The notes under the pieces: model-generated
The model's database searches: none
The model's input: only the letters and a program-made list of their open reading frames with translations
Told to the model about the DNA's origin: nothing
Made by a program: the position numbers and the translations under genes
In this document: piece by piece, positions 51,775 to 64,000 of the stretch
How positions within the stretch are numbered: the stretch's first letter is position 1
Layout of the letters: each line of letters opens with the position of its first letter
Assembly (NCBI GenBank): GCA_900088475.1
Contig: FLMG01000116.1
Span: 11,302 to 75,301 of the forward strand
Length of the DNA: 64,000 nucleotides
Direction: 5' to 3'
Source of the DNA: Hyphochytrium catenoides
Taxonomy: Eukaryota; Protista; Hyphochytriomycota

Positions 51775-54700
51775 TCAAAATCTTACTGTAGCTAAATCAG
51801 GCCGTGCACGGTTGCACATTTCGCAATAAAACTGAGAGTCCGCGTTGAAGTAAGTACATCCACCTTGCTCAGAGGCACAAATCCACTTTCCCGGTGGCAC
51901 CTCCCTCTTCCCAGTCCATCCGAGGTCACACATTGCACATATTTTGTCCTCAATAGAGTTTACAAAGGTGCAGTTGTTGCATCTCCATGTCTGTGGCTTG
52001 GCTTCTTCGGAAGGACGCTCGCCTTGCGCATATGGATTCCTGGCCTGACAAATGGCACAAGCCGCCGATTCTCCAGCGTTCAGATAAGTGCACGCCTCAC
52101 ATACCCATTCAGAGGGCAAATCAATTTCCCCGCCCCTGGGGCTCTCAGTCTTGACTTTCAAAATGACGAAAGTGGAGCTGAACTCCTCCCAGTCGATCAC
52201 ACTGTAACGAGTACAACGAAGGGGTTTAGTTAGGACTTCAATGCACTTAGAAGCGCAACTGACCAAGAGGTGTGGGGAAAGAGTTCACTTTAAGATCTTC
52301 CAAGGTGACTGCGAGCCATAGGGAGAACAGGAGGCCTGCGCTGTCAGGACATATAAACACGTACCCATCGCCCTTCTGGTCAGCCACGTGAATGACCTCA
52401 ATAATATCTCCTGCAGAGAAGCCAAGCTTCAGAGATTCGAATAGTCGCTGTGTCTCATCAAAAGTGAGTCTCCCGTCATTATCAAGGTCAAATGTCCTGA
52501 ACGTATCCTCCATGTCGAGCTTTTTGATCTTGATCTCGGAGTTAACCTTCAAATTGAAATCGTCAGAAAGGGATGCTTATATACCATGTCATTCCTTCAA
52601 AGGAGGGCCGCAAAGCAACTGGCCATCGTAACATAACCTTCTTTATCACTCGAACGTGGAGGTACTAATGCTGATTGCACCGTTTGGCCCCTCACCTGTT
52701 CCAGTTTGGCCCTAGCATGTAATAAGTGCCACTCTTCCTGCCTTGTGAAAATCTTGGCCAACGGTGTGTCTCCCCAAAGATGGCGCTCACGACGCCTTAG
52801 TCGCAGTGTCTCTCCAAAGAAGATCAGTCTGTACGGCGAGGAGATGGCGTTAATGCCAATCGTCAGCAAAAGACGATGGCCTCTTCCAGACTTGACGGCA
52901 GAGCGACGGAAGTAGAACGCACTTCGCGAAAAAGAAGGTATTCAAGCTGAAGACTTACCGATCAGGAAGAGACACATCCTTAAGTCCCTCCATCAATGCT
53001 TGCAGCTCATTATCCGTGTAATACATCTCTGCATTATAGAAACGCAGACACTGCAATCCTACTTCCAGTGCAGCTTCGGAGGCTTCCGTTGTTTCGTAGG
53101 CTTCAGAGCGGTCCAAGAGACGACCATCCAGCGTTTTGAGCGCGACTGCCGCGGCGGCTAGCACGGGTTGCTTTGAATGGATGACCCTTCGTAAGGTCTC
53201 AGCTTCGGCCAACGAAATCGCCACAACGAATCTAACTGCACTATCGGCTTCGGCTTTAAGCTGGGTCTGAAACTCGGGGTCCATCACTGTCTGAAGGGCT
53301 TTGGCGGCGGCTGCGTTCGCTTCTAGGCCTTGCGCGATGAGGGAAGTGAATATAGCCGCTATATGAGTCTGTAATGACTTTTTCGTCGCTTGGGGCAGCC
53401 ACTCCATGACAATATTAACATTCTTAAGCCTGCGGTCACCAAGGCCGACCCAAGTCGGTCGGAAGAAGTTGTCCGATAGCAAAAGATACTCGGGAAAGTG
53501 GATCTGGACACTATCTGCACGAATTTTGAAGTCACTGAAGCGGTAAAACGCTTCTTCGCCACGCTTAAAGGATGGCAAACGGCTAAGAAGCGAGAGGTTC
53601 CAGGGATTGTGCTGTTCGTCATCGCGTGTGAAGGCCGATATCTTCTGCTCTTCTTGCTCAGCTTCCTGTTCAGCTTCTTGTTCCGCCTCAGCTTCATTCT
53701 CATGCACCACTTCTGCAGTCAACTGCATGCTCACGGTATCTCTAGTCTGAGATTCTGACACTTGTTGGACTAAGTGGACTACGTAGTTGACCCGCTGGTG
53801 CTCAAACTCCGATTGCGTAAAGTCTCTGTTATGCTCTACTAGCTCCCGGAGTTTATCTTTGAAGAAGGTGGGCTTGGGAATGTAGTCGGGCACAGGGTAC
53901 CCAATCTTTTCTCTAAATTGGCCGATCGCGCGTCGAAGGAGGGCGTGAGACGAGTCTTTACCCTCAAATCGACGGAGACGACTGTGGGCTGTGGTGCCGC
54001 TTTCTGTCGGGCCATTAGTATGCACTTCATCAATTAGCAGCCGAATAGCTCTCTTTCTCCAGACATTGTGAAGCTCTTGAAGAGAGAGTTGAATGAACTG
54101 TAGGCTCTCCATCCTCATACTGTTGACCAGTAGCCAAGCAGGCACGTCAATTTCGGCCATGGACGTGGCCCGCCCCTCCAGGTCCCTGGCCATCCTGTTC
54201 TTCACTTCGGGTATGATATACAGCTGGATGGTCTGCCCCTGTCCGATGCCCCTCATTCTATAAGCGCCTTGCGCATAGTCTCTGAAGGTCATGTCTTTCC
54301 CTATGGTCAACACTGCTCGAGCATTTGGCCATTGCTTGATGTCCATTCCGGTGGTGTGGACTTGGTCGTAGAAGGTAAACCGTTTCTCTGGATCTATTCC
54401 ACACTGCATAAGGTTGATGGACTTTCCAGTGTTACGGAGAAGGATCATCTTTCGGTCCAATCGGTCTAGGTACACCACACCTTCGAACGTGTGGGGAAGG
54501 TGCTCAAGCAGAAAGTGCGCAACTTCTTCATTGTCCATCCCTGTAATCAGTGCCCCCGTATCGATCAAAGCGTGAACTGCAGGGCTGGAACGTGCCACAT
54601 CCATTAGCAAGGTCTTCGCGGTCCAATCAGACTTAAAGATAGCGGAAGTGACTGATGGCGAAGTGAGAACATTGATAATTCTGCCGTCGCTGCCAGGCTC

Positions 54701-57700
54701 GTAGAGACACTCCCCCAAATCTACAGGGAGAAGATTCGACGGTGTTCCTGAGAACCCAATGCGTGATTGGAAGAGGATATCACTACCTAGCTCGTGACCA
54801 GATGCGCTGATCTTGAGATTTTGAAAGTTCATGCAGGCCGGAAAGACGTGTTGTCGCAAGTAATAATGGACCACCTCCGGAACCTTTCTGACAAGAATGA
54901 AGAGCTGGCTGAGCTGCTTCGGATCGTTAGGCTGAAACAGGGGGAGAGGCAGTACTGGGATGGCCTCTCTCTTCCCTGCCCGCCTGCTGGACTTTGCCAT
55001 CCCAAGGAGGAGCCATCTCTTGAAAAGAATGCTCGCTGGTCGCTGGTCCCTTGGCCCAACCTGCCGACTGTAATCCTGCTTCAGCTGCTGGATTAGCCGC
55101 TTCAGGTCGGATATCCTCAGACCTTCGTAGCGATAGGCTAACACGGTGAGACCAATTACCACGTCCGGATGAGCGAACTCGGAGGATCGGCTAGGCACAT
55201 CTTTTCCGACAAATGGCACAGCCATCAACCGGCGACTTAACGGAGCTTTTGGGTCTATCATTGTAAGATCTGCAGGGCTGAGTATGCCATAGGAAACGCG
55301 ATCTATTTTCGAGAGGACATGGGGAAGCAAGGTCATAATCCAGTCTCGACAAAGATTTAGCAGTTTTTTGCTCTCTTGCAGAAGTCCATCCTCTATCTCC
55401 GCTTTCTTGATGTCATCCACTTCCTCCCTCGTCAGATACTCTAGCAGAAGCTCGTCAGAGACCTTGCAAGTACCAACAAAGTGATCATGGAGCCAAAGAA
55501 GGGCCCATCCCGCAATTAAAGGCTTCAACCGTTGATGATAAAAATCAAGATCCAAAAGCACCAAGTGCGGGATACGTTGCATAGCGTGACCCTCATAACC
55601 CTCCTTCAGGGTCTGGTCAAGGGCTTTTACGATCCCAGATGCGGCTTCCACTGACCGCCTGCTCTCTTCCGACGTCACAACGTGCGACTTACTCCTCGTT
55701 CCTTCCGCTCCCGTACCAGGAATAGGCTCCGTCAGCTCGCCATGGCCCAAGTGGAATATGGCATCTAGAATAAAAATGGGAAGGTCCCACCTTGGCCCGG
55801 CCAAGTCAATAGGAAACTTATTGCCAATCGGGAAATTGAGCTCAGAACGAAGCGGGTGAAGTAGAACATCAACTTCATCCATGATAAGAACCCCTTGCCT
55901 CCAGATATCCAAGATGCGCACCAGGGCATCTGCCATATCTGAGCGAGACGTCATGACATCCCTTAGTCTTGCCACTTCCTTGTTGTGTCTCACGGATGTG
56001 GTTGGGACCAGGGAAGCAAAATCCACTTGCTCTATCGAATGAAGCTGTTCAATGAATTTGAGCACTAAGCTCTTGATAGCCTCAGGTGGGGCGCAGACGA
56101 CGTCCCCTCGCCTTCTAGCGCTGTCCAACTTAGCATATAGCTTCGCCACAACCTCTACGCTATCCTCACATGAACGATCAAAGACTAAGGTGTAGACCCT
56201 CTTGGTCACAATCGAGCTAAACCGCGATCGTAGAATGTTACGAGTTTGCTCAAGGAGCGCTGTCGGCATGACTTGTGTTACGAGCGAGCGACGGTCAGCC
56301 AAAATGAGCGTGAGCAGTGGACCGACCACAGTTGTCTTCCCATACCCCATAATCATTTGCTGCACCATTGATTTGCCTGTCTTTGCACTGTCGACGAAGG
56401 AGTTGACCATCTCCACTTGTCGCTCTCGCAGCTGGATTTCAAAGATGTACTCGAAGACCAGGAAGCGAGGATCGTAAGTAGCGGACCGAGCGGATGAAGA
56501 GATGGAAATCAATGCGGTTTCCTGGTCCTTGTATTGAGTATAGTGCCTGACCGTCCCAAGCACTTGCGCTAGCTCTATCGAGGAGTGAGTCACCCTGTTT
56601 ACCAAGGAAGCAAGCTGATGAGGCTCCCTAGCGCTGAAGAGCTGCAGCAATAGGGACTTAAGAGCCTTTGCTTTGGAAATAACGCCGCTAGCGTGGGTGA
56701 TTCTGTTGGTGTGGAGAATCAATGCTTGTGAGAGGAGAATAACTTTCTCTGCGCTGCCCACGTAAGGTGAGGAGGATAGAAGATCTTTTTCCAATCGAGA
56801 AGAGAGAAGAAGAGCAATAAGATAGCTCACGCCAACCACTTGTCGCTGTCGTCCAAGCCTCTGCAAATAAAAAAGACACTTCTTCCGGGTCGAAGCAGGG
56901 TCTGCCCTTGCTTGACTAGCATTCGCGCCTGTTCCCTCTACATCCACCGTCTGGATCAACGTCCCGAGCTCATCCAAGCACCGATTGACGTGCTGGAAGT
57001 CTTTCTCCCGCAGCTTCTTTGTATCGTCAATGAGGTCATCTAGTAGTTGATTCGCGCCTGTGAAGACTCCATTTTGCGTAGTGAGAGCATGAAAAGAAGT
57101 GGAAGGCGAAGAGGAAAGCAACTGCAGGCACGAAGCTAAATCTTCGTCAGTAAAATAACGTAACCGGGGAAGAGGCCTAGCATTGGTGCTTTCTGCGTAA
57201 TCCTTGACGTCTTTGCTAAGCCTTCTTAGCAAGTCTTGGGCGACAGCTGTTTTTGATGCAGGGTGAGAATGGAGATCGAATGGTAGCACGTCCATAACTT
57301 CTTCCCGCTTCTGATCTAGCAGCACGTATTTATCCAGACCGATGCTACTCAGAGGCCGCGTAATAAACTCAGAGAGAGCAGCTGGAGATAGTTCTAGAAG
57401 CGGAGAGAAAGAGAAAGGCAAGAAAGGCCTCTCCTCGCAGCTGGTGTCTGAAGGGACCGCCGGTCTCTGGAGGCGTGCATCTGCTTCCCCTTTTATCTCA
57501 CTCACTCTCAAACTTCTAGAAAGCGGCTTCTCCTTCAACACTCTCCTNNNNNNNNNNNNNNNNNNNNNNNNNNNNNCTATCATTATCCACGGGAACGTCG
57601 GGCCAAGCTGCCTGCGGATGTCTCATCATACAGGCCAGTACGGCCATGGCTCGGGAGGGTACAGCTTCCTCCTCCCCCTCTCCTGCAGTCTCCTTCCCCC

Positions 57701-60700
57701 ACCGTGCAAGCTTCAGCTGGAAAACTCGAGTGAGAATCTCTCCAAATGAGCGATTGATTCTTCTTCCGTCGTATACAACATGGAGCTGCTGAAGGAGTAC
57801 TTCGTAGAGAAAGAGAAAACCTAATTGCTTGTTGGCTCCACTCTCTTCGTCGGCGGGAACATCATCAGACCAAAGAAGTTCGAGGCAATCCTCGTCCTTC
57901 AATAGCGTGCTGAGGCCCCCTGCTGAACCTCCTCCGCCTATCCCTCGCAATCCTCCTCGTCCACCTTCGTCCTCTTTAGGTCTTGGTGGCCGCTTGTATG
58001 TCAGACGGGTAAGATTGTGACCGTGTTCATCCAAGTACCTCTTCCCTAATGAAGTCAGCTTGTACCACGGCTGACCTCCAATCTTCGGGTGCTCTATGGG
58101 GAGGATGAGGTCCAGATCCTCGGCCCTCCGACGGCCATTCTCCTTGCTTCGGGCAGAAAGGAAGGCCATACGACACTTAATCGGCGTCGTGAACTGCTTG
58201 CAAAGATGGAGGGCATCTAACTCTTCTTCCCAGGTCAGTCTGCAGCCAGCTGAGACATGTGGGAGCTTGGCTAGATAGCCATGGGCCTCCTCGTGCACTT
58301 CCCACGGTGCCTTATTGTCTGAGTGCATAACGGCTAGTGAGAGCTTCAACCGGACAGCGTGAGCATCAGGATGAAGATCGTCGAGGGTCCGAGAGAGCTG
58401 GCCGAAGACCCAATTCTCCTCCTACAGAAGCATAAAGGGAATTATAAGAATTGTTATTTTGTCGTTAGCTGAGCTGTGAGCGGCAAAGGGAAGCAAACAC
58501 TGGTTGTACTTAGTTCGTGCACCCTCCTTGTTCAACGATAGCAAGATCTCATGAATGTCCAGAAAAAGCAACTCCTAGAGAGAACAAGTCCTAGAAAAAA
58601 CAGAGCGCATGTTAAGGTAAGGGTAGAATGCTTCCCACCTGAGTGAAAGGTACGTCAACGGTACAGCTATCGATCAGCGAAAATGCTGCTTCGTAATCTC
58701 TATGCAGAAATCGCAGCAGGATCAGGTACAGGGCCGACCCCAGAGTGTTCATCACGAGGAAGGTCCGAGATGTGTGCACAGGGTAGAGGTAGTACCGTGT
58801 CTCCATAACCTGCGTGAAAGGGACAGGGAAGGCTTGATGAAACGGATAGTATTACAGTGATAAACAACGCAGTTAGAGAAACGTAGATGGCTTCAAGAAG
58901 GTAAAAGCGCCAACCATCATCTATCGTCAGCTTAGCAAGCGTAGAGCTGGCTTGCAAGTAAATAGACTGGTACCAGCGCCAGTGATAATAACGAGTGACG
59001 AAGTTTGTATGCAATCATCCCTCCTTAGGACGAATCAGAGCAGCGTCTTACCTCCTGCCACCCTATGGAGCCTCTGTCGCTCACAACCTCGGCAGAAAAA
59101 GCGTTGCCTCTCACTCGTGGTCGGTAAAGATCATGATTAGCCACTAAAAGTTGCATGTCGCCATTAGTGCTCTCCAAGATCAAGGAGTTAGGGATCCCCT
59201 CTACTAGTCTTTGCAAGTAGGATGCACAGGGCGATGCTACTCCGGCCACAGTCGTGTCTGCTATCTTCCCTACTGGATCATGAACATACCAGCCGGCGTG
59301 ATCGGTGAGGAAGAGGTGTACTTTTCCCTCAGCGTCTCTTTGTGGCTGAAACTTAAGCTTCAGACGTGGAAGCTCAATCATTGCAATTTGACAAAGAGAA
59401 GATATATCAACTTCCATTTTGCTCTCCTCTCTTCCTCTCTCATCCGAGCCCTCTCTCTCGCCAATTACCGCCTTCGCTGTATCAGTGATGTTAGAGCTGC
59501 TTGTCCATACTAAAATATGGGAAAGATTCTCCAGGCGTGAAAGTGTACTGGCCATGCGAAAAAGAAGAGAGTGAGAGGGTGCATTGAACAGGTCCAGGAG
59601 CACCAAATCACCTCCAACATGTGCGCTACTTGAGGCCGGACGAGGAGACACACCTCCAGACGCTGTCCGTTCGTCTGTAAATAGAGCAGCTGCAGGTCTC
59701 GCACCCTGGTCCTCTACCTCCATTGCGTCCGAAGAAGCAGCCGGCTGCACTCCCTTTCTCTGATCCTCATAGGAGCGAATCTCTCCCTCATTGGTAGGGT
59801 CAGATAGCCAAGCTCGAGCCAGGTTCACGTCGTCTCCAAAGAGCTCAAGAGCGTAGTCCAATGCATGGTCCGAGAGCGAAGGAAGAGAGAGCTTTAGCTC
59901 AGAGATAAACTGCATACGGGTCAGTGAACGAGAAAGAGAGGCCTCTCCCTCCTTGATTACTGCGTCAACCTCGTCTCCCGCCATTGCTTCTGCAAGAGCT
60001 ATCTCATCCTGATTCTCCTCGTCAAGGAGCCACTGTGCGGCGAGGGCTACAGAGTTACCGCACTTCTTGAGCGCTAGTTTGCAAGCAGCGGGATCAAAGC
60101 CCAACGCTACAAGCTCCAATATCGCTTCTTCTGAAGGCAGAGAGGAATGGGACGCCTGCTGATGTGCCTTTGATGTCTGCCGGACAAGCGGCGGTGCAGC
60201 GGCTAGGATCTCCTTAGGATTCTTAACTTTGGAATGCTCCGCTGCAAGAGGCCTCCGAACGACTATCGCGCTAACCCTAGCTTCTCCGTCTATGCCGTTG
60301 TCTTTCCTTTTCTTGCTCCCTGGGAGAAAAATCTCTATGTTATAGCCGAACCACTGATCGTTAGCATCCACAGGCCAGCCCCGAAGGATGTCATCCTCGC
60401 CTATCCAAATCTCAAAGGCTTCCAGGAGTGCGGATGGGATGAGTCCTTGTAAAAGACGGGGAGGTAGGTAAGTCTCTGTTCCTCCTATACTCTGGTTCTT
60501 TCGGACTATGACGAGGGACGAGTCCACATCTCTCCTCTTCTTCCAGTCTCCGGCAGAAAATGTCACTCCTGCCTCCAGACTGATGCCCAGGCGATCAAAG
60601 TTGGGGGAGAGAGAGTGAAGAGGAAAGCGAGAGTCAGAGGAAAAGACCAATTGGCGGTACATTTTCCTACCATGGCTCACTAGGTTGAAGACCAGAACCA

Positions 60701-63700
60701 ATGACCTATCTCTCTCCACTAGGATCTCCTTCCATGTTGATGGGAACAGCTGATTCCCGAAATCATCCTTCTCTGCCTTCTCTAGGCCTATTAACCGGCA
60801 ACGTCGTGCCGCGGAGGTTAGCTTCTGCTCAGGGAACAGAAGGGGATATTGCAGTTTGTTTTCTGGAGGAAGGGGAGGGAACTCCGCATACACCACGGGC
60901 TTTAAAATGTTGATTACCCACTCCTCCTCAACTTCTCCCCAGGGTTCGTCTCCATAAGGATCCCAGACACGCGAGTAGACTTCTCCATCGTACGAGTACG
61001 AAGGAGGATTCTCTGCCTCCTGCTGCGGGGCAACAGCGCCCCGAGGGGTGCCGCACATCTCACAAGTTGTTCCTCCATTAGCATTGTAGAAAGTGCAAGC
61101 AAGGCACTGCCAGAAGGCCTGGCTCATGTTCGCCGAGCTACTCGAAGACGAAGAGAGAGAAGAGCGCGGTTGCCCTATTCCTTGATCCTCATCCTCAGGC
61201 TCATCCCACTCCTGAATATCACAATCGGTCCCTACTACATGGATCCACAGCCGGTGCCTCTGCCTGGCGACTAGACCACAATGTAGAGGCTCTCTACCAA
61301 AAATAGTCTCATAGTCGGCGAACTGGACGACAGAGTCTGGGACAGGCTTCAGCTCATCATTCCGCCATAGAACTTCAGCACACTGCACATCCACCTAGCA
61401 AGGAACGAAAGATCACAATGTAAGACTAGAAATGGCTGTAGCCACCAAGCATATAGGTAAGATTAGGAAGAGGATAAAGGCAACTTCGCTACATTCGTAA
61501 AACGCAGTCATAGACTCTAAGACAGTTGTTGCTGAGAAGCACGGAGCTAGGAAGTTACAGCCTACCTTCAAGTCAGTCTTCTCTGCCCAGTAACGGCCAG
61601 GGACTCCTCCAGTGGCCCTCGTCCATCCGGAGTAGACGAACTGCGGCGTCTTCAGCGCGGTTTTCACCACTTCTGTCAACAAGTTGTCCAGGGCCGCCCG
61701 GTTGGAGCTCTCCAAATGCTCCAAGAACTGGACCACTTGCCTACGTTGTCTTTGGAGCATCTCAAATAGTGAGGATTCAGGCACCTCTACTGGAGGATAT
61801 CTCTTGCCTTCTTGTGGTGCACAGAATGATGGCGCACGAATAGTCTCACCTCCTACCTATACTCCATTGTAGGTTCAAGAAGAGGATTCAAGTTAAGGCA
61901 AGATGACACTAGTCAGCATTCTAGACGAAAGAGCGGTCTTGCTGAGAAGATGGACAGTTGAGGTCAAGCAAACAAAGATGATAACAGCTAGAGACGAATT
62001 GGACGTAGGCGACGAAGGGTTAAGGTGTGAGCTACTTGTGCAAGGCAGGGAATCAGATGTACCTGCAGGAAGAGAGGCCTCCCTCTTAAATACTTGTCCA
62101 ATGAGCCAGGCGCGATGTTATCAGTCTTAATACCTTGTGACTGCATCCAACGGACAAGCCTCTGCTCAGGGGTGAGACCATTTTCCCTCAAAGGCAGCGC
62201 CGTTTGTCCAAAGGCGTGCCAGTTGCGCACATATGCGAGTGATCCCAACATGCGGACCAAGACCTCTTCAGTGAGCTCTGAATAGCGCGCGTTCTTCCAT
62301 ATAAGTGCAAGGTAGGAATGAATAACGCAAGCAGTGGTGATATCCTCAGCCACCTCAGCTTCTCCTTTCCACCTATTGAGGCAATCAGCTGCAAAGCCAT
62401 GAAGGAATGCCCTTAGCCTTGCCAGGTAAGAACTAAGGAGGTCTTCCTGCTGCTTGGAAGGAGTGAGAGAAGGAGGAAGGGCGAGAGAGCCCTCTGAGCT
62501 ATCAATCAGCTGAACCACATAGGTTTCTACATCTACCGCTAGGCCAATCATATAGATTATGAAAGCAGCATCAGGTGAATGAACCGGAGCTTCTCCAAGT
62601 TCTTTGACACTGTTGAACATTTCAATTAGTGGATCCATCGTGGCGCCAGGAGAGAAAAGTAGCTCATTCAGGAGCAGGCCATATGGAGATCCTAATTGCT
62701 CTGTTTGCTCTGGAACGCGGGCGTCTAGGAGTCTTTCCAGTGCTTTCTCCCGCCTTTGGGTTACCGTAAGTCGCACTGGTACCTCTCCAATCGTCTCTGG
62801 GCCTTTACGAAGGGGCACCCAAGGCCCGGGCTCAAACAGCACAGCTCTTAGCAGCTGTTGCAGCTCAGAGTTGAACAAATAGGTGACCCTATCTCTTGAG
62901 GCAAAAAACCCAACGATTAGGGGGAGACGTGCATAGGGCACAGTAAGGTAGGAGAGAAGGCATTCTGCCTCCTCGACGCTTAAGGTCCCCTCAAATGTCG
63001 GAAGGCTCTCCGCATGCATCACATCGTCTTCTGTAGGGTACGGCAGACCCAAAATTCTGCCGATATCTGACGGACTCACAGTTACTGGGCCTTCGCCGAA
63101 GAACAATCGTCTGCCCTTGAATCCATACACTTCTACATCAGCAATGTCAAGATCTAAGCCTCTAAAATTGACCACTTCCCAACGAAGAGGGGTGTCTGGC
63201 CGGTAGCTAGCGCCAAAACGCCGGAAAGCCGTGTTCTCGTCGAACGATAGCTGCCAGCTTTGCCATTGCTTCGGAGCCAGTCTTCGCCTCATGAGCTCGC
63301 TCTCTCTGCTTTCCATTGTCGAGAGGAATTTGTAGATTGCTATCATGTCCCGGAGCATTCCAAACTCTGGATGTTCCTGCTGCAGTTTTGTTCCCTCTCC
63401 AAACATCCAGTTCATTAACGCTTCCATTTCGGTAGGAGGATTAGGATTGTTCGGCGGGAAGAGAGGGTAGCCAGCCCTCTCCATCAGTCTTCTCAGAAAG
63501 CCGACAGTGCTGCTGTACTTCCTAATTTCAACTCTGTCCTCTGGCATTCGATAGTCGAAGAGTGTGTGGGAACATGTTGCTTGTAGCGCCTGGATGTATT
63601 GCAGTACCGAGTACATACGAAGGTTCAGCTGCGGTCTCGCAGTTTCAAGGTAAGTGGCCACTGCTTCGTATGGGCGATTGTCCTATAGAAATACGGCAGA

Positions 63701-64000
63701 ACGGGAAGAGATAGCGCGATTAGAACTCAGTCTTAGCGTCGAGAGGTGCAAGGACGAGGAGAGCGGTTGAACTCGAGGAGAACCGCGTTTAATTTTTGAC
63801 GGAGCTATCTAGCTATCAACAATAAGTACGGACAAACAATGAGCAGAAGCGCAACGTAGACTTCAGCTGTAGTGCTCTCCACGGATAAATAAAACCACTA
63901 TTATCTCTTCCTCTCGCGATCTTTTAGCTGCCAAGACGTCCTTCCCTTGCGCTTGCTTACCTGGCAAAGGTTAAAGGCTACGCAATAGCCTCCGTTGTCA
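51775..64000 (-). CDS. Giant DUF3638/DUF3645-type SF2 P-loop ATPase with NZF x4, UBA/CUE x2 and an EF-hand pair; 5' end beyond the window (>3,500 aa in window)
   Basis: YDPRFLVFEY.FEIQLRERQ, QMIMGYGKTT, LIMDEVDVLLHPL.SELNF, MAVPFVGKDVPSRSSEFAHPDV (DUF3645-like), GFSGT, ALIDTGALITG, FYDQVHTTGMDIK, AQGAYRMRG. ORFs 61988-63661, 61413-61784, 59025-61394, 58612-58806, 57516-58349, 52955-57583, 52597-52869, 52247-52552 and 51775-52266 are exons of one gene. A further exon runs from 63961 to beyond 64000. Confidence 0.85.
57548..57576. other. Assembly gap (29 N) inside the giant ATPase CDS; explains the apparent frame change
   Basis: Run of N; the flanking ORFs are in different frames. Confidence 0.99.

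Follow-up and report, generated by a model that had tools for sequence, protein, structure and literature searches.

SecA is a polypeptide translocase that, to our knowledge, occurs outside bacteria only in plastids, and ubiquitin-directed protein unfolding in the eukaryotic cytosol is thought to be the work of AAA+ rings. The preprotein-binding domain of SecA is built as a bilobate bulb with an antiparallel beta stem and closes on nucleotide-binding domain 2 (NBD2) to form a clamp (PMC11610655). In addition, divergent SecA_DEAD modules have been described in giant Omnitrophota proteins in a 2023 preprint (bioRxiv 10.1101/2023.11.21.568195), and the Aravind group has reported 'SecA-like helicase-related domains' in Amoebophilus effectors and giant actinobacterial toxins. 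The DUF3638/DUF3645 proteins, which in many eukaryotes rank with the largest conserved proteins, are mentioned only in passing in the literature retrieved by text search, and their mechanism was still called undefined in a 2025 proteogenomics paper (PMC12615304). Here we examine a gene of this family from Hyphochytrium catenoides, found in a stretch of 64,000 nucleotides (the window; contig FLMG01000116.1, positions 11,302 to 75,301 of the forward strand, assembly GCA_900088475.1), whose product is predicted to carry a superfamily 2 (SF2) motor of SecA-like architecture with a novel inserted domain.

The gene has many exons and encodes a DUF3638/DUF3645 protein of more than 3,500 aa; its features are collected in Table 1. 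This family identity, proposed in a first-pass annotation of the DNA, is borne out by Pfam, in which DUF3638 (PF12340; 109.8 bits, gathering cutoff 31; E 1.6e-31) spans the Q motif to just beyond motif II, and DUF3645 (PF12359; 57.9 bits, cutoff 25; E 6.2e-16) is a signature of 32 residues midway through the insert. The seven motor motifs that the same annotation had listed are all present where it had placed them, within one open reading frame (ORF) on a motor exon of ~4.6 kb, and the insertion of about 370 aa that it had noted between motifs II and III measures 367 residues, motif II ending at ORF residue 575 and motif III starting at residue 943. In an alignment of 55 homologues over a 966-aa core (A1; 46% mean column identity), the residues of Q, GxGKT, DExD, SGT, TTGxD and QGxxRMR are kept in every sequence, in agreement with the claim that the motor is complete, and the segment HPLxSELNxPxG directly after DEVD is likewise invariant. 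The protein is an SF2-type ATPase whose two RecA-like domains carry motifs Q, I, Ia, II, III, V and VI; because the residues for ATP binding and hydrolysis are invariant in the 55 sequences, the motor is, judged by this alignment, under strong selection as an active ATPase. The SecA motifs that had been cited for comparison were found in the translation of Escherichia coli K-12 secA (EMRTGEGKT; DEVDSIL, 209; GMTGT, ~391; GRGTDI, 508), and the position given for the SecA preprotein-binding domain, between motifs II and III, agrees with the published account (PMC11610655).

The conserved core was modelled with AlphaFold2 on A1 and no templates (predicted local distance difference test, pLDDT, 82.8; predicted template-modelling score, pTM, 0.81), and its secondary structure was assigned by DSSP. 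When the model was compared with the PDB by Foldseek, six SecA entries came out on top (E 7.7e-7; TMq 0.32-0.34), followed by MDA5, DNMT5, a TFIIH subunit and DinG (TMq 0.20-0.25). A second, Foldseek-independent search, in which all of 48,161 representative PDB chains were compared and given Z scores, ranked in the same order, with SecA first (Z 18.4) and Mycobacterium tuberculosis SecA2 at Z 17.0 (450 residues aligned, model residues 1-955), and the two full-length proteins stood 3-5 Z units above every helicase. Of all solved structures, SecA and the wing-less SecA2 are thus the nearest to the predicted architecture. Presence of the SecA scaffold domain adds ~4 Z and ~100 aligned residues, which fall in the long helix of the model and in those that follow it, and only with the SecA C-domain does the alignment reach model residue 911-955, the Z score rising from 14.2 to 17.0-18.4. 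Since the gain arises only with the scaffold domain, it is the whole predicted architecture, and not the RecA motor alone, that would place the family with SecA. The core model does hold, as a prediction, a helical scaffold of the kind that follows NBD2 in SecA, where it consists of a long helix and the IRA1 helices; long helices may align trivially. SecA residues 597-816, which include a wing domain of ~80 residues that SecA2 is not known to have, correspond to only ~123 model residues; because of this, and because the wing-less SecA2 aligns furthest, the modelled layout suggests a wing-less, SecA2-like motor.

The insert occupies the same place as in SecA, between motifs II and III and ~10 residues past DEVD, and in each of the two proteins a Gly follows the first Asp by 18 residues; the first strand of the insert begins 10 residues after DEVD, inside the invariant HPLxSELNxPxG. 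This position is not diagnostic of SecA, because the Arch domain of XPD and DinG is inserted at the same point. Folded alone (A2), the insert formed a bundle of 14 helices of ~340 aa (pLDDT 81, pTM 0.83). Searches with it yielded no match in the PDB (best Foldseek E 1.1), including the XPD and DinG chains, Arch, Hel2i, other helicase accessory domains and known enzyme folds, and in the ESM Atlas only DUF3638/DUF3645 clusters matched (TM 0.77), every other row being at 0.33 or below. The insert is therefore predicted to be a new all-helical fold particular to the family and, as it matches nothing in the PDB, would not be homologous in fold to the SecA preprotein-binding domain, to which it corresponds in position alone. 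Thus, of the first-pass proposal that the protein is a SecA-type motor, the overall architecture has held up as a prediction in both structure searches, and a shared fold of the inserted domain has not.

Within the insert, the DUF3645 signature hardly varies between eukaryotic supergroups: K448, D449, P451, S452, F457 and D461 are found in all sequences and H459 in 46 of the 55. Its first half is a low-confidence loop in both AlphaFold models, with pLDDT below 50 at model residues 444-457, and this combination of near-invariance and low model confidence suggests a binding or catalytic loop that may be ordered only with a partner.

Around the motor, the protein carries modules that read ubiquitin. 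Along the chain, one NZF and a UBA domain lie upstream of the motor, and an EF-hand and three NZFs lie downstream; the best PDB sequence matches of the NZFs were those of Npl4, TAB2/3 and HOIP, and the best ones of the UBA were the UBA domains of NUB1 and USP5. The fingers have the CTF or CTY signature by which ubiquitin-binding NZFs are marked. Taking this gene together with ~120 homologues, the accessory domains comprise UBA, NZF, AZUL, RING, WW, SH3, FYVE, EF-hand, thioredoxin, PA and F5/8 type C, and no nucleic-acid-binding domain was found among the ~120 homologue architectures. Several members in UniRef (e.g. P0011, P0018, P0056) are named 'ubiquitinyl hydrolase 1'. This is an unverified database name with no visible basis, because Pfam shows no peptidase domain in the large exons of the gene or in three long homologues, and it may have its origin in the shared NZF and UBA modules and not in an enzyme domain.

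Taken together, the best explanation, held tentatively and at somewhat less than an even chance, is an SF2 ATPase core of SecA-like architecture with a novel insert, set in a giant ubiquitin-reader protein and more likely a polypeptide motor. The narrower proposal of a protein-remodelling motor is possible and still short of probable. The substrate is weakly favoured, by a small margin, to be polypeptide, through extraction or unfolding of ubiquitinated proteins, rather than nucleic acid, because the closest structure is a polypeptide translocase and because the accessory domains bind ubiquitin or protein and none of them nucleic acid. The multi-domain context (UBA, NZF, EF-hand) would argue against a canonical Sec role. 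In the mechanism proposed, targets marked by ubiquitin would be reached through the NZF and UBA modules, with possible calcium control through the EF-hand. The ATP-driven closing and opening of the RecA domains would be passed to the insert via the invariant HPLxSELNxPxG strand adjoining DEVD and to the C-domain via the long helix, and the insert and second RecA domain might then grip and release a linear substrate.

Several observations weigh against this explanation, and they are the ones that would be expected to speak for a nucleic-acid-dependent SF2 translocase or helicase recruited by ubiquitin readers, as ZRANB3 is to ubiquitinated PCNA and RQT to ubiquitinated ribosomes, in which case the likeness to SecA would be convergent or trivial and the insert would act as the XPD/DinG Arch does over the nucleic-acid path. 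On the sequence level all hints look helicase-like. At E<=10, Pfam gave a single weak DEAD match for the protein (0.0099), to which homologues add DEAD (5e-4) and ResIII (0.062), and the SecA families (SecA_DEAD, SecA_PP_bind, SecA_SW) did not appear even at this threshold. Searching the PDB by sequence, with the single protein and with the 55-sequence profile, returned nothing usable; hhalign of the family profile against the single E. coli SecA sequence gave a probability of 0.3%, i.e. no match; and the language-model neighbours were bacterial ResIII/DEAD proteins at noise level only. In local hmmsearch, sub-profiles of RecA1, RecA2, the motor and the C-domain scored ~0 bits against E. coli SecA, RhlE, RhlB, DinG and RapA, near zero also against Rep, UvrD and Rho, and 7 bits against RecQ, a non-discriminating result, and the isoelectric points of the domains were uninformative on nucleic-acid binding. 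The motifs themselves are mixed, DEVD, MxxGxGKT and G-F-S-G-T being SecA-like and LRxxQ and SGTP ResIII/SNF2-like; in E. coli RapA, by comparison, motif III reads LTATP and motif VI contains RIGQ. A SecA-specific relationship is accordingly backed by no sequence-level method. Moreover, the isolated E. coli SecA motor (Z 14.2) is about level with CasDinG (13.2), FANCM (12.9) and CSB (12.9), the modelled motor being equally close to helicases, and ubiquitin readers occur together with motors that act on DNA or RNA as well, for instance ZRANB3 and the RQT helicase. On the other hand, the lead of full-length SecA and SecA2 over all helicases, the lack of nucleic-acid-binding accessory domains, the failure of the insert to match any helicase accessory domain and the absence of a conserved cysteine cluster for an Fe-S domain do not fit such a helicase, which we consider a real though doubtful possibility.

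It has also to be considered that the motor is an ATP-controlled switch without polymer threading, serving an activity in the insert or elsewhere, with the DUF3645 loop as a catalytic or ligand site that might fit the hydrolase name in UniRef. The loop is among the best-conserved segments and yet modelled as flexible, and conservation of the insert equals that of the motor (46% mean column identity), both of which are in keeping with it, as is the name itself. However, the hydrolase label is unverified, no peptidase domain is detected by Pfam in the exons of the gene or in the three long homologues, and the insert lacks a known enzyme fold, so that a switch of this kind appears improbable.

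Compared with known systems, the SecA-like motor favoured here differs from SecA and SecA2 in that no relationship is detectable at the sequence level, the bilobate preprotein-binding bulb of ~150 aa is replaced by an all-helical insert of ~340 aa, no C-terminal metal-binding tail is seen, the Q motif is LRxxQ instead of FDVQ, and the motor sits in a eukaryotic multi-domain protein of >3,500 aa, unlike SecA of bacteria and plastids. In the Rad3-like XPD, DinG and CasDinG, the four cysteines of the Fe-S domain lie between motifs Ia and II, where no cysteine is invariant or nearly so in the 55 sequences; their alignment to the core ends at model residue ~807, the C-terminal helices not being common to both, and the Arch fold of XPD and DinG finds no counterpart in the insert. 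The SecA_DEAD modules of giant bacterial proteins (Omnitrophota, Actinobacteria) are alike in that a SecA-type motor is built into a giant multi-domain protein and serves some end other than canonical Sec export (10.1101/2023.11.21.568195). Those modules, and likewise the SecA-like domains of the Amoebophilus effectors, are recognisable by Pfam and come without scaffold, whereas the eukaryotic DUF3638/DUF3645 proteins show no Pfam SecA signal or PPXD fold and have a predicted scaffold-like helical C-domain. Functional analogues of the unfoldase and DNA-translocase readings are p97/Cdc48 with the NZF of Npl4 and ZRANB3 with its NZF and SNF2 motor, respectively, both of which join an ATP motor to NZF-type ubiquitin readers; p97, however, is a hexameric AAA+ ring and not an SF2 motor, and ZRANB3 has a standard SNF2 core without insert or scaffold helices.

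The exons of the gene were delimited by tblastn with homologues as the series 63034-62201, 61388-59049, 58818-58642, 58442-57579, 57547-52950, 52869-52693, 52540-52358 and 52197-51778, collinear from at least 63034 down to the stop codon at 51775. In the diatom Fragilaria, residues 1151-1413 of a 3668-aa homologue (P0135) align to 63034-62201, and because another 1,150 residues precede this part, more N-terminus is expected upstream of 63034, and the gene probably continues beyond the window end at 64000. The 557-codon upstream exon at 61991-63661 is kept in diatom homologues and has no Pfam, PDB-sequence or language-model match; besides the NZF and UBA modules, at least 1,500 N-terminal residues of the family have no domain assignment. 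Within the coding region lies a masked run of 29 N at 57548-57576, at the upstream edge of which (~57579) the homology stops in one frame to be taken over in another at the downstream edge (~57547); this change of frame may reflect a small intron or a length difference. Short exon-fragment homologues stop at about 53651 and mark the limit of the conserved core.

Table 1. Features of the DUF3638/DUF3645 gene in the window, in order along the protein (positions in the window; model residues refer to the predicted core)
Feature	Position	Strand	Basis
Giant multi-exon gene, visible part	51775..63661	-	tblastn of homologues, collinear exons
Upstream NZF (RanBP2-type) zinc finger, CTF signature	61053..61112	-	Pfam PF00641; sequence
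UBA domain	60027..60134	-	Pfam PF00627, E 6.7e-10
Large exon with entire motor (1542-codon ORF)	52955..57583	-	ORF list; homology unbroken 57496-53021 to Polarella P0011
First RecA-like domain, N-terminal part, motifs Q, I, Ia, II	55841..56479	-	Pfam DUF3638; model residues 23-235, alternating strands and helices
Q motif, LRERQ	56417-56431	-	
Motif I, MIMGYGKT	56333-56356	-	
Motif Ia, VMPTALLEQ	56246-56272	-	
Motif II, IMDEVDVLL	55859-55885	-	
Inserted domain	54803..55840	-	model residues 236-581; long strand at each end (236-245, 573-581), 14 helices between
DUF3645 signature in insert, PFxGKDxPSxxSxFxHPD...YRYEGL	55145..55240	-	Pfam PF12359; conservation counts
Return into first RecA-like domain, motif III	54656..54802	-	model residues 582-630; motif; conservation
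Motif III, GFSGT (GFSGTPS)	54743-54757	-	
Second RecA-like domain, motifs V and VI	54176..54655	-	model residues 631-790; motifs; invariant residues
Motif V, HTTGMDI	54338-54358	-	
Motif VI, QGAYRMR	54251-54271	-	
48-residue helix right after second RecA domain, candidate counterpart of SecA scaffold helix	54014..54157	-	model residues 797-844, DSSP
Further C-terminal helices of conserved core	53651..54013	-	model residues 845-965
EF-hand exon	52358..52540	-	Pfam EF-hand families, E ~1e-8; tblastn
Last exon, three NZF-type fingers (CTY, CTF, CTY) and stop codon	51775..52197	-	Pfam PF00641, 3 stretches, E 1.9e-9

More than 390 homologues passed E<=1e-5 and shared 40-63% identity across 800 aa; the named sources are dinoflagellates, oomycetes, kinetoplastids, diatoms and one chlorarachniophyte, with haptophytes and ascomycetes added through ESM Atlas clusters. 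DUF3638 is further mentioned in papers on Tetrahymena, microsporidia, Plasmodiophora, Aspergillus and Hypomyces, and DUF3645 in Trichoderma. Dozens of metagenome 'proteins' of ~1,100 aa (L001:10001-13321 and similar, P0042-P0120) falsely suggest a short stand-alone form; a reading of them as stand-alone bacterial forms was rejected, as they are prokaryote-style single-exon gene calls on eukaryotic contigs with adjoining HSF and Paf1 genes, and clusters with such calls also contain members of 2,350-3,670 aa. A scan of 185,579 prokaryotic genomes with two very specific peptide patterns, which is no valid test of absence, gave one match, PABI01000099.1 (L005:3-9947) of the Anaerolineaceae metagenome-assembled genome NAT123. 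This 9.9-kb contig (65% GC) is wholly one 3,315-codon frame of the family, open at both ends, with DUF3638 and DUF3645 and 38% identity over 1,168 residues, and it may stem from a contaminating high-GC eukaryote or be a genuine bacterial copy.

In the openly searchable literature, that is, outside subscription journals, no paper linking DUF3638/DUF3645 to SecA was found, and what is predicted as new is that a giant multi-domain protein of eukaryotes holds an SF2 motor of SecA-like architecture with a novel inserted domain. It has even been considered that the family represents an ancient cytosolic SecA-type motor, already present in the last eukaryotic common ancestor, which has the scaffold architecture in common with SecA, in which a novel helical domain replaced the signal-peptide-binding bulb and which pulls or unfolds ubiquitin-marked polypeptides, although this fuller account seems rather unlikely. 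With members in oomycetes, diatoms, dinoflagellates, kinetoplastids, chlorarachniophytes, haptophytes, ciliates, fungi, microsporidia and Plasmodiophora, the family gains from its predicted SecA-like shape a first testable idea of function. If the SecA-like architecture is true, it would provide a concrete, testable mechanism and raise the question of whether a SecA-type polypeptide motor was retained or invented anew in eukaryotes. Should nucleic acid prove to be the substrate, the family would still add to SF2 a new branch whose inserted domain is also new, and if the polypeptide-unfolding reading is true, ubiquitin-directed protein unfoldases would include a second class besides the AAA+ one.

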